A stretch of DNA of 64,000 bases from Macrostomum hystrix (GCA_950097015.1 CATNEN010000005.1:3596001-3660000); one strand, 5' to 3'. Positions 34,617-38,647 are shown, numbered from the stretch's first letter. Made by a program: numbers and translations. Notes: a model not told the origin generated them from the sequence alone.

Positions 34617-34695
34617 ATGGCTGCAGCCCAGGAATGCATTTTGCTGGCAGCAGCGGCCCTCCTAGCTGGACTGTGTGCGGCTGACAGCAATCAGT
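34617..34695 (+). CDS. Lectin-Ig membrane protein, exon 1 (signal peptide)
   Basis: MAAAQECILLAAAALLAGLCAADSNQ. Acceptor ttcatAG at 34596-97 upstream, donor T|gtgagt at 34696 (phase 1). Confidence 0.75.
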
Positions 34696-34786
34696 GTGAG
34701 TTGCAGTCCATGGACATTCTTGTTCGAATGAGAATCGGTCAGTATGTCGTCCACTTCAATTGATTCTAAACTAATTTTCGTTTCAG

Positions 34787-35171
34787 GCACTCTCAACATC
34801 ACCAAAGATTCCATCGCTGACTCGTGGCAGTCGTCCAGCTATATTGAAAACCATCAGACACCACTGTGCTTTAAAAACCAGTCCACAGAGACAGAATCCA
34901 AAAATTTCTACAGATTCTTCCACTCGAAAGTCAGTAAGAATGACGCAGATGCAGGCTATCACTGGTTTGTGATCAAACTGAAGAGGCCTGAGCTGATCAG
35001 CTCTGTGGGCATCAGTGCCAGGTCTTTGACTTACTTTGACTTAGCGGCAGGGGGCCTCCATGACGGACGCAGCGAGGAGGCGGCTGGTGCCGCCCATATC
35101 GCTAACCCTTGGCAGCCAGACGGCCTCCAGCGAGGCGGTGCCGCTCAGGGTGGTCCGTCGGTCAGTGCCAG
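34787..35171 (+). CDS. Lectin-Ig membrane protein, exon 2 (F-type lectin/discoidin-like, N-half); 3' end ambiguous (35021, 35171 or 35176)
   Basis: Phase-1 acceptor cgtttcAG. C...CF...FFHSK...HWFVIKLKRPELISSVGISAR resembles the PWWxVDL...IxxVxIxNR pattern of FTP/F5-8 domains. Confidence 0.65.
35025..35161 (-). mobile_element. 5'-truncated non-LTR retroelement fragment (RTE-like 3' end) with 13-bp TSD
   Basis: TCAGTGCCAGGTC is repeated exactly at 35012-24 and 35162-74. The GC-rich insert reads on the minus strand ...SRLLAASVMEAPCR* immediately followed by a TAAGTCAAAGTAAGTCAAA tail. Confidence 0.7.
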
Positions 35172-35325
35172 GTCAGGTGAGCGATTCAGTTAATTTACAA
35201 TCAAGAGGTACTGAATACCTGCTCCTAACGATTCTCTTCAAGCTCTTGTTTGCAGCTCAAAATAAATAACTAATTGACATTGTAGAAGCAATGGAAGTTC
35301 CCATCGCTAAAATAATTAGCTTCAG

Positions 35326-35512
35326 AGCAGCAGACATTGAGATCTGGACTTCTCAAACAGACGTCGATTTTGGACATGAGCACTGCGACTCAAAGAACAT
35401 CAGCTCTACTTTCATTAGAGGACAGAGCTCAGGTATCTGGAAGCTGTGCGGCAGGACGCCCTCAAATGTTTCTGCAGGACAATACTTGAGCGTGCCCTGC
35501 GTCAGGCAACAG
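35326..35512 (+). CDS. Lectin-Ig membrane protein, exon 3
   Basis: Acceptor gcttcAG (phase 2; phase-1 alternative at 35331). DIEIWTS...HCD...KLCG...GQYLSVPCVRQQ, donor CAG|gtgagg at 35513 (phase 0). Confidence 0.65.
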
Positions 35513-35909: not shown

Positions 35910-36012
35910 GTCCGAATGATTCTGCTGAGAAAATACGTCGCAAACGTTACTGATGAACAAAAACAGTGCATGAACTTTATTGGCATGTGGATTCGAATAC
36001 TCGTAATAAAAG
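35910..36012 (+). CDS. Lectin-Ig membrane protein, exon 4
   Basis: Acceptor gctttcAG, VRMILLRKYVAN...CMNFIGMWIRILVIK, donor G|gtgagt at 36013 (phase 1). Confidence 0.6.
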
Positions 36013-36328
36013 GTGAGTTTCCTCTACGATTTGCCAAGAAAATTTTGCAAAGAAAGAAGCAAACATGTGTTAAGCTAATTGGCATATAGAGTCAAATTTT
36101 TCAATAAATATTTTTCAATTAAGCACCAGGTGAGTATTCCACACTATTTTTCATTCGATACCGAGTATAACAAAGGAACTTGGAAAAGTGTTGCGCCTGT
36201 CGCGGTATTGAGAACACTTTTGGTGTGCCATGAAGCACCTGCCAATCTGCCAACTCTTATTCTGACTCTCGCAAAGTCCAACGGAGATGATATCAATGAC
36301 AGTACCAATCCATACAATATAGTTAGCG

Positions 36329-36740
36329 ATAGTAGCCTCACAATAGTAGCCTCACAATAGTAGCCTCACAATAGTAGCCTCACAATAGTAGCCTCACAAT
36401 AGTAGCCTCACAATAGTAGCCTCACAATAGTAGCCTCACAATAGTAGCCTCACAATAGTAGCCTCACAATAGTAGCCTCACAATAGTAGCCTCACAATAG
36501 TAGCCTCACAATAGTAGACTCACAATAGTAGCCTCACAATAGTAGCCTCACAATAGTAGCCTCACAATAGTAGCCTCACAATAGTAGCCTCACAACAGTA
36601 GCCTCACAATAGTAGCCTCACAACAGTAGCCTCACAATAGTAGCCTCACAATAGTAGCCTCACAATAGTAGCCTCACAATAGTAGCCTCACAATAGTAGC
36701 CTCACAATAGTAGCCTCACAATAGTAGCCTCACAATAGTA
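36329..36740 (+). repeat. 14-bp minisatellite (ATAGTAGCCTCACA), ~29 copies, intronic
   Basis: Directly visible. Abuts dispersed repeat copy 2. Confidence 0.96.
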
Positions 36741-36910
36741 GACACCCCCGACGAGAATTCTTAAATATCTCGACGATGCTGACGTTTTGTGATTCTGGAA
36801 GTTGTTTAATCGGATAGAGCTAAAAGTTTTAGCCCGGGTTATGGACTTTCATGGCGAATGGTTGAATAATTTAGGAGATACAGATAAAATGTTGGAGTTT
36901 GAAATACTCC
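36741..36910 (+). repeat. Unclassified dispersed repeat (copy 2)
   Basis: Aligns by eye with 11727-11904. Confidence 0.7.
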
Positions 36911-36969
36911 ATGTGGCCTTCTCACCGTTTACAATGTTTTTCATACCTAATTCCGAATTTCATCAATAG

Positions 36970-37209
36970 CGAATATATCAAAGAATTCGGCGATTCAAAA
37001 CTCACAAGTCACCGTCAGATGCCATGTCGATTGCATACAGAACAATGAGACGATCAAAATGGTCAGACTGACTCGCGAAAACTCCCCTCTGACACTCTCC
37101 ACCGGATTGCAAGCTCACCTGATTGAGCAGGTGCAGCTGTCTGATGCAGGCAACTACATCTGCAGCCTAGGCGATGAGGTGCTCAGCAGCCAGACCCTGC
37201 GAGTACTCC
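36970..37209 (+). CDS. Lectin-Ig membrane protein, exon 5 (Ig domain)
   Basis: Phase-1 acceptor catcaatAG (36968-69). The frame is open upstream of the ORF-track start: NSQVTVRCHV...LIEQVQLSDAGNYIC (both Ig cysteines, DxGxYxC). Donor C|gtgagt at 37210. Confidence 0.75.
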
Positions 37210-37277
37210 GTGAGTGGCTCGTTACCAATGAGCCCATCAAACTATCCAACACTCACTCATAAAAGTGCACATTGCAG

Positions 37278-37610
37278 ATCCTCCGAGACATCTGTCGATC
37301 TCCGTTGATGAGCACAGTCTCAGTGTGGGGTCTCGAGCTCGATTCGCAATAACTTTTGAGTCGTCAGTGTCAGAGCCTACTCCTGAGCATGAGTGCATTG
37401 CTACCGACTCGAGTCTCAGACTGCTCACTCTGCGAAGACTTGGAAACTCGAGTATGACCAGCTCACAGTCACTGACCTCTGTGTGGGTCTGTGAGAAGTG
37501 CTCCTATGTTGACAGGCTGACTGCAAACTGCTCAGCTAATCAGTTTGATGAAGTGAGCCAGTCTCGACTGCTGTTCTCAACTCACGCAAGCATCGACTGG
37601 AAACAGAAGT
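37278..37610 (+). CDS. Lectin-Ig membrane protein, exon 6 (second, degenerate Ig-like domain)
   Basis: Phase-1 acceptor attgcAG. PPRHLSISV...SEPTP...LTANCSAN, donor T|gtaaga at 37611. Confidence 0.65.
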
Positions 37611-37682
37611 GTAAGAAGAGTTTAAGCTTTTGTAGAAAATCAGTCGCAATGAAATGTGATGCTCGCTGCTCTGTGATTTCAG

Positions 37683-37804
37683 CTGCAACGAAATCCGACA
37701 TGCAGCCAAAGCAAGTGTGCTCAGTGATCTGGCTTCCTTGGTTGCTCATTGCTGTTCTCACCGCGGCACTCTTGAGCGTTTGCGGTTATCTGGTGAAAAC
37801 AAAG
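37683..37804 (+). CDS. Lectin-Ig membrane protein, exon 7 (transmembrane helix)
   Basis: Phase-1 acceptor gatttcAG. VIWLPWLLIAVLTAALLSVCGYLV followed by KTK. Donor AAG|gtagca at 37805 (phase 0). Confidence 0.7.
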
Positions 37805-37872
37805 GTAGCAGCTTTACCTGACAAACTTTTTATGAAATCTGGCTTTGATAAATCAGTGCTCAACTGTTTCAG

Positions 37873-37959
37873 AGGCAGCTGGCCATTGTTGAGCGCCAGC
37901 AAGCCATCAAGATGTCGGCAGCTCGACCATCTCGAGCGAGCATCTACATCGAAGCTTAG
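37873..37959 (+). CDS. Lectin-Ig membrane protein, exon 8 (cytoplasmic tail)
   Basis: Acceptor ctgtttcAG (37871-72), RQLAIVERQQAIKMSAARPSRASIYIEA*. The eight exons sum to 1386 nt (461 aa), or 511 aa if the 150-bp insert is included. Confidence 0.55.
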   Translation, partial: RQLAIVERQQAIKMSAARPSRASIYIEA

Positions 37960-38647
37960 CTCCAATGCGTGTTGAATGCGCTGCATTGCTGGAGGTGATC
38001 ATGCTGGAACTGATGTTTCGGAAACTGGTTTTGCTGTCGACACGGAATGAACTGCATGTGCTGACAGCTTTCACTGTGCCTACTCTTGGAACATTTTATC
38101 CATGGCAGATTTGATTAATATGATATTCAGCACGAATTCAGTCACTGTTGGATGATGTACTCATGAATGCGGTGACAGAACTAGCCTTCTTAATTAATCA
38201 TACCGTTTGCCGTGAAACCAATACTATTTTTAGACCGGAAAATGTTTTGTTTTTGACTGAGTCCAGTTTATATGTTTCGACAGTTTCTGCCGGTAAAACA
38301 GAAGGCTTTTGTTAAACAAGTGTGCCTGAAAGCTCTGCGCTGAGTCTTCGTATCAAGTCTTTATGCTTATTCAGTACTTTGCAATCGCAATAAATGTGTT
38401 ATGTTTACCCCCTCTAAGACAAACTACCTGCATGGAATATTTTTTTTATTTTTTGATACGACAATTTAGTAGTCCGTGACTGCATAATGCTAATGTTCCG
38501 TTGATTTGCAAAGATTTTAAATAAATCAATAAATGTATAAAAATAAACTCTTATAAAGTGATCCAGCACTAAACACTCGTAACAAATGAGTACTTGGGTG
38601 AATTTACTTGGGTGAGTTCGCTGGGCTGTTCGTGAGTGACTAAAAGG

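Follow-up and report, generated by a model that had tools for sequence, protein, structure and literature searches.

Insertions of L1 into human coding exons that cause disease combine an intact 3′ end with a 5′ truncation and microhomology at the junction. They are flanked by 12-13-bp target-site duplications, end in poly(A) and stem from a young, high-copy source family. Among the other non-LTR elements of the APE type, those of the RTE clade finish with a short tandem repeat where L1 has poly(A), are about 3.2 kb long and contain essentially a single ORF, without RNase H. LINEs of the I group (I, Nimb, Ingi, LOA and Tad1) have a separate ORF1, an ORF2 with the domain order APE, RT, RNase H, and a short-repeat tail. 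Inserted DNA can also become an intron when a proto-splice site is duplicated, as seen with introner elements, which are DNA-transposon-like and bring their own splice signals, and with experimental AGGT duplications. On the protein side, the eel agglutinin (1K12, Anguilla anguilla) and the striped-bass protein FBP32 (3CQO) are F-type lectins, for which the fucose motif reads His ... Arg-x-Asp-x4-Arg/Lys.

Here we describe a LINE fragment in a predicted receptor gene of Macrostomum hystrix, within a window of 64,000 nucleotides, the whole stretch of DNA that was analysed. The fragment has the intact 3′ end, the 5′ truncation, the microhomology, the duplication length, the coding-exon target and the type of source family known from L1 insertions, but it differs in that its element has RNase H and a short tandem repeat at its end, and in that the insertion keeps the reading frame and brings in no stop. 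Its source is an APE-type element with a short tandem repeat at the 3′ end, as in the RTE clade, but unlike the compact RTE elements it is about 6 kb long, its ORF1 encodes 518 aa and an RNase H domain follows RT. It shares the ORF2 domain order, the separate ORF1 and the short-repeat tail with the I group, although its ORF1 has no Pfam match. As in introners and AGGT duplications, the inserted DNA has GT at its 5′ end and AG at its 3′ end, so that exact removal is formally possible; unlike introners, it is GC-rich and offers a poor donor context. The host domain has F-type lectins as its profile match and best fold match, and equivalents of Arg79 and Arg86 are present. It differs from these lectins by sub-threshold Pfam scores, a Glu in place of Asp81, a longer loop between the two Arg residues and near-equal fold scores for CBM32.

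Results

A 137-nt LINE fragment flanked by a target-site duplication

A reading made earlier from the sequence alone (hereafter the sequence-only reading) had described an exact 13-bp duplication around a 137-bp GC-rich insert. We found both copies: within the 64 kb examined, TCAGTGCCAGGTC has exact matches at 35012-35024 and 35162-35174 and nowhere else, and two matches were seen in none of 100 dinucleotide-preserving shuffles of the window. The insertion consists of the following features.

35012 to 35024, unstranded: left copy of the target-site duplication, 13 bp, TCAGTGCCAGGTC; single copy in eight paralogs
35025 to 35161, minus strand: 3′ end of a LINE, 5′-truncated, 137 nt, near-identical to dispersed copies in the genome
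35162 to 35174, unstranded: right copy of the target-site duplication, 13 bp; the paralogs carry one site

The fragment lies antisense to the host gene and is made up of the last 14 nt of ORF2, a TGA stop and a 3′ UTR of about 120 nt; it closes with a short-repeat tail at 35025-35042. Read on the minus strand, it ends in two copies of a unit of about 10 nt, with a TAA just before them. A minus-strand end composed of a stop and a short-repeat tail had been proposed; the tail is indeed there, but the TAA is not the stop of the element, which is the ORF2 TGA at 35145-35147. At the other junction, the last two bases (GA) of the right duplication copy, on the 5′ side of the element, equal the element consensus, which amounts to a junction microhomology of two bases. 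When compared with 19 other copies, the window copy showed a single private substitution in its 137 nt, and an extra A in its tail was common to three of the 19.

The source is an abundant LINE family with APE, RT and RNase H domains

Searching the M. hystrix genome with the 137 bases yielded at least 408 first-look candidate copies. Forty copies among these candidates were scored, and all 40, spread over at least 15 contigs, were 97-100% identical to the insert. A common 3′ terminus was present in all copies, consisting of two 9-10-nt units (AAGTCAAGT/AAGTCAAAGT) followed by unrelated flanks. Upstream the copies run on for differing lengths, with many truncation points, into RNase H, RT, APE and ORF1. 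First-look candidates numbered 408 at the 3′ end, 262 at RT and 184 at APE, and this falling count toward the 5′ end is the usual 5′-truncation gradient.

The element is about 5.9 kb long, as seen in the copy at L022:3775-9659, which is 99.2% identical to a second copy, L046. A Pfam search of its 518-aa ORF1 gave no match. In ORF2, Pfam detected APE (Exo_endo_phos_2, E=5.8e-18), RT (RVT_1, E=1.6e-28) and, after RT, RNase H (RNase_H, E=1e-13). ORF2 has the C-terminus ...PTDGPP-TGA, and the window fragment starts 14 nt before this TGA. Furthermore, the truncated copies L003 and L006 are also flanked by 12-13-bp target-site duplications. The insert had been taken for a retroelement fragment with a target-site duplication, and both the dispersed copies and the longer ones, which encode endonuclease and RT, agree with that view.

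Together, the duplication, the colinearity with the 3′ end of the element, the truncation gradient, the microhomology and the single private substitution are hallmarks of recent target-primed reverse transcription, and the insert is a fragment left by such an event. An assembly artefact, in which a repeat entered the exon through chimerism of a long read or an error in polishing, would draw on just such a high-copy, near-identical repeat family. Against it stand the perfect 13-bp duplication of the local target, a length typical of the LINE family, the precise 3′ end of the element, the microhomology at the 5′ junction and the private substitution, and we regard it as extremely improbable.

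From sequence comparison, the source LINE is judged to be young, and it is, or was until recently, active in M. hystrix. It had been assigned to an RTE-type clade, which fails because an ORF1, an RNase H domain and a span of about 6 kb all depart from the RTE type. About 1,300 public relatives have the same APE-RT-RNase H Pfam architecture, the closest named source being Macrostomum lignano, and this architecture was common to all 1,200-aa ORF2 relatives found. A clade label, sought in the source names of the ORF2 relatives, was found in none of them. We therefore file the element as I-group-like, an assignment by domain architecture.

Two shorter candidates for a full-length element, L021 (2.2 kb) and L038 (3.4 kb), were rejected, since longer copies show both to be merely truncated. 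Tandem repeats with a unit of about 96 bp occur in the 5′ region of the LINE and vary in number by copy (L022:3507-4039, equal to G000:C1:2091506-2092038), and ORF2 of L022 has a TAG between its APE and RT parts. One LINE copy (L021:6856-7600, on G000:C39, together with the L005 flank) lies within a long GGTTCCGAAGGGGTT-like array that repeats about every 19 bp, which is another abundant satellite of the M. hystrix genome.

Splice sites and phases place the fragment inside exon 2

To describe the host gene, exons were searched singly and by reference, and phases were read across the separate exons. The resulting model is as follows.

34617 to 34737, plus strand: exon 1, with start codon and signal peptide; ends in phase 1; read from the ORF and donor
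34787 to 35176, plus strand: exon 2, 390 nt now and 240 nt before the insertion; phase 1-1; first half of the lectin-like domain
35022 to 35171, plus strand: hypothetical GT..AG interval, 150 nt, arising from the duplicated AG|GT; a reading of the sequence
35177 to 35285, plus strand: intron 2, with donor GTGAGC at 35177 and acceptor TTGTAG| at 35285
35286 to 35512, plus strand: exon 3, second part of the lectin-like domain; starts with a loop hypervariable across the paralogs
35910 to 36012, plus strand: exon 4, last strands of the lectin-like domain; ends in phase 1

In the exon 1 region, homology to paralogs runs from 34481/34549 onward. The acceptor (TTTCAG|) and donor (CAG|GTGAGC) of exon 2 are kept in all eight close paralogs, the frame of exon 3 is open only with one base carried over from exon 2, and exon 4 is 50% identical to residues 168-199 of the M. 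lignano protein P0007.

The three GT sites listed in the sequence-only reading, GTCTTT (35022), GTCAGG (35172) and GTGAGC (35177), are all present in the sequence. Donor 35177 (CAG|GTGAGC) is in phase 1 and agrees with the consensus at 8/9 positions, and the other two are in phase 2, with 6/9 positions for 35022 and 7/9 for 35172. Moreover, the GT equivalent to 35172 is AG in two of the eight paralogs, whereas the donor at 35177 is invariant. The true donor, as predicted from these sites, is thus 35177, and the insert is exonic. Since both repeat copies lie upstream of this donor, the insert sits inside exon 2, 2-15 nt upstream of the conserved donor, and not at a splice donor as had been supposed.

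The same three sites had been proposed to act as a switch, with donor choice giving isoforms of 461 aa and 511 aa and a regulated ligand loop. The phases speak against this. Both 35022 and 35172 are out of phase with exon 3, as the acceptor at 35285|35286 needs phase 1, and the 461/511-aa switch fails for that reason: joining either donor to this acceptor gives AG|A AGC AAT GGA AGT TCC CAT CGC TAA, with a stop eight codons past the junction codon in exon 3. A fitting alternative acceptor for exon 3 was sought and not found, since the upstream CAG at 35255 leads to stops within six codons in all frames, and in-phase GTs within the insert match the consensus at 5/9 positions at most, so that none makes a good donor. 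Although three GT sites exist and 35172 agrees with the consensus at 7/9 positions, two of the paralogs have no GT there, and a donor switch is very unlikely.

A different way to an insert-free message is offered by the duplicated AG|GT. Removal of 35022-35171 restores the ancestral mRNA exactly, in one register only, and an mRNA lacking the insert would require this interval to leave as a GT..AG intron of its own, from a weak donor. The locus would then hold a nascent intron, with mRNA and protein both ancestral. Its boundaries are exact, with a single working register, and its 150 nt are a normal size beside local introns of 49-397 nt; the pyrimidine fraction is 0.55 at the candidate acceptor and 0.45 at the real acceptor of intron 2. 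However, the donor GTCTTT (6/9) has no purine at +3, no A at +4 and no G at +5, whereas the real donors here read GTGAGC, GTGAGG, GTGAGT and GTCAGT. The interval, which comprises the insert and one repeat copy, is 66% GC, against 35% in each of three local introns, and a consensus donor in the right phase is available 155 nt downstream. A nascent intron is thus an unlikely outcome at this site. From splice-site quality and phase we infer instead that the insert is kept in the mRNA.

The insertion site is empty in close paralogs

A six-frame search of the genome with exon 2 identified at least 77 homologs. Eight of these are close paralogs, with 83-86% amino-acid identity and on the same contig as the host gene. 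Comparison with empty sites had been suggested as a check on the insertion, and the paralogs bore it out: in the DNA alignment all eight have a single target site, TCAG(G/T)GCCAG(GT/AG)CAG|GTGAGC, and all are exactly 150 nt shorter than the host copy. In addition, exons 2, 3 and 4 align colinearly with P0007 of M. lignano, which does not have the 50 residues. By these alignments, the insertion is specific to the host paralog. An empty-allele ORF was also sought with the 149-aa ORF of exon 2 plus insert among 5.8 billion proteins, a set from which M. hystrix proteins are seemingly absent, and there was no match at E<=0.001.

The assembly represents the M. hystrix inbred line SR1 (F ~0.998), with haplotigs purged (PMC10468722), and the insertion is therefore probably homozygous in this line. 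RNA-seq of M. hystrix has also been published (PMC10468722). Homeologs had been named as a further place to look for the empty site, a notion that does not suit this species, since the karyology of M. hystrix is simpler than that of M. lignano and lacks the recent whole-genome duplications of the latter (PMC10468722). Apparent intronless distant paralogs on contig C38, with open frames of 266-310 aa, were discarded because they are in truth read-through of a stop-free intron.

As had been noted, the insertion adds 150 nt (insert plus one repeat) without a stop in the exon frame: the ORF at 34744-35193 yields the same 50 residues. On the gene strand, the insert can be read without a stop in two frames out of three. 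The usual family copies of 135-136 nt would bring stops or a frameshift into the exon, and only the 137-nt tail variant is open and in frame. Since copies of typical length would break the frame, the openness amounts to an event of about one-in-ten probability, or to survivorship, and is not evidence of function.

The fragment lies in a predicted loop of a divergent F-type-lectin-like domain

Pfam searches with the single exons, with and without the insert, found no family at E<=1. With the M. lignano homologs they gave F5_F8_type_C and F5_F8_type_C_2 at E ~0.01, below the cut-offs, and the language-model neighbours of exon 2 were clusters with F5_F8_type_C_2 or F5_F8_type_C. A profile built from M. 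lignano proteins (A2) and run against the PDB matched the striped-bass FBP32 (3cqo, E=7e-5) and the eel agglutinin (1k12, E=3.4e-4), with none else below E=1; a profile of exon 2 only had 1k12 as its sole PDB match, at E=1.2.

The AF2 model of P0007 has a mean pLDDT of 66, with blocks of 64-94 across most of the domain and lower values in loops. When residues 20-207 of this model were compared with 48,161 chains, the best match was 1k12_A (Z 10.3, 136/158 residues aligned). The next structural matches were the F-type lectins 3cqo (Z 9.7) and 2j22 (Z 9.4) and CBM32 (Z 9.5-9.9). Foldseek with the full 407-residue model returned mostly Ig and Fab matches. On this medium-confidence model, the host domain is predicted to be a divergent F-type-lectin-like fold, with fold and loop taken from a homolog at 40% identity.

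HMM alignments, of exon 2 and of the family profile, put the insert right after the Arg equal to Arg79 of eel fucolectin, as the sequence-only reading had it. Arg79 corresponds to the final Arg of exon 2, and Arg86 to the one that precedes A-A-D-I-E-I-W in exon 3. The assignment to F-type lectins thus stood as far as fold and profile are concerned, but the RxDxxxxR motif that had been read into it is degenerate here. Both Arg residues of the fucose motif are kept, and the window has R-S-E, with Glu for Asp81; the Cys82-Cys83 pair is missing and a Ser is aligned to His52. Before the insertion, the spacing from Arg to Arg was 14 residues in the subfamily, compared with 6 in the eel lectin. Because the rest of the fucose motif is lost, we treat sugar binding by the domain as hypothetical and place the domain as divergent F-type-lectin-like.

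Variation among the paralogs is concentrated near the insertion point. In the nine A-type paralogs (L049-L056 and the window copy), nearly all differences fall in 34845-34859, 34890-34904 and 35280-35324, and the rest of the A-type exons and intron 2 are 92-100% identical. The third patch, 35280-35324, is the loop that hosts the LINE fragment, and its length already varies among paralogs; it would fit a variable recognition loop tolerant of change. The three-patch pattern is CDR-like and suggests that a recognition receptor is under diversifying selection or undergoing patchy gene conversion.

The host gene is a mosaic member of an expanded family

A profile of 23 exon-2 translations, run against 1.84 billion proteins, found 19 representative relatives only, and the eight relatives' clusters that were looked up were all from M. 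lignano. The receptor family appears, from these searches, to be restricted to Macrostomum and expanded. Its predicted proteins combine Ig-like domains, a TM segment and a tail containing Tyr with an F-type-lectin-like head, and its members lie in tandem clusters on C5 (3.50-3.57 Mb and 4.24-4.31 Mb), C8 (2.5-3.7 Mb), C38, C31, C7 and C3. The tails of the M. lignano proteins P0003 and P0008 end in Y-E-N-S-E-Y-K-L-E-N-A-x-G-(V/I)-Y-I, with three tyrosines, a possible signalling motif.

Beyond exon 4, the host copy contains two further parts.

36222 to 36290, plus strand: relic of an A-type Ig1 exon, 69 nt, 93% identical to L090:1932-2000, which lies within the intact Ig exon of a paralog
36295 to 38407, plus strand: 3′ part of the gene, 2.1 kb, with minisatellite intron, Ig exons, TM and tail

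As far as 36290 the host copy is 84-93% similar to the A-type paralogs. By blastn, 36295-38407 is 98.6% identical, introns included, to a B-type gene (L093) at C5:3518500-3524000, on the minus strand and about 110 kb off, and the last-exon proteins of the two are 98% identical. The mosaic junction cuts the A-type Ig exon at a 14-bp minisatellite. This minisatellite (36300-36750, unit CAATAGTAGCCTCA, about 30 copies) is found in the B-type source gene and not in the A-type paralogs, and it is a possible recombination substrate at the junction. Phases are coherent across the junction, from exon 4 (phase 1) to the B-type Ig exon (phase 1) and on to the last exon, and the chimera could still encode a complete receptor. 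Read in this way, the host copy is clearly a young product of birth-and-death evolution.

These features also bear on whether the host copy is dead or dying, that is, an untranscribed or nonfunctional mosaic paralog in which the open frame is coincidental. The near-identical 2.1 kb shared with a second member of the family, with its junction at a minisatellite within an A-type Ig exon, would be in keeping with this, as would the high redundancy implied by at least 77 exon-2 copies, the two open frames out of three with openness at about a one-in-ten chance, and inbreeding, which allows harmful alleles to be fixed. Yet all recognisable exons are open, their phases are coherent across the junction, and the start codon, the signal peptide and the splice sites are intact. 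A dead copy, which as to consequence overlaps with the explanation that we prefer, is possible, but we think it the less probable state of this gene.

Discussion

The explanation that we prefer begins with a recently active LINE of about 6 kb, which would have inserted its 5′-truncated, 137-nt 3′ end in antisense orientation by target-primed reverse transcription. The nick would have fallen 2-15 nt upstream of the donor at 35177, making the 13-bp duplication and, by its position, leaving the whole insert exonic. That the length (137 + 13 = 150 nt) preserved the frame, and that this frame has no stop, would be chance. If the gene is transcribed, the default product would have 50 extra Gly/Ala-rich residues right after the Arg79 equivalent, between the two Arg-bearing strands and in the most variable part of the paralogs. 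We infer that the insertion was tolerated, as neutral or mildly harmful, in a redundant and rearranged copy, and was fixed in the inbred line. The outcome would be a retained and probably disordered loop insertion of 50 residues in a redundant mosaic paralog, fixed in the inbred line and without any regulated switch, and we hold this to be likely.

On this evidence, the locus presents an ordinary young transposon insertion at a notable position. As a young LINE insertion of the textbook kind, it serves above all to improve the annotation: it reveals an active LINE family of the APE-RT-RNase H type in M. hystrix, corrects the gene model with its donor at 35177, and flags one receptor paralog with a 150-nt exon segment derived from a transposon. 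More would follow if the insert were expressed and either spliced out in part through the duplicated AG|GT, as an intron born of a retrotransposon, or displayed as 50 Gly/Ala-rich residues in the hypervariable ligand loop between the two Arg residues, where a transposon tail would have diversified the recognition surface of a rapidly evolving receptor family. Though we rate such an outcome as improbable, the first case would be a natural example of intron birth and the second of transposon-driven loop diversification.

The context outweighs the insertion itself: the host belongs to a large family of membrane proteins, arrayed in tandem and restricted to Macrostomum, whose head is divergent and F-type-lectin-like. 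Variation among paralogs almost only in the three patches, together with near-identical introns, suggests a family of diversifying recognition receptors.

About 750 bp past the end of the receptor gene, a 46-bp satellite begins. With a strong strand skew that makes the plus strand rich in G and A, it occupies 38738-64000 and runs off the window, in at least 549 tandem copies that are 97% alike.
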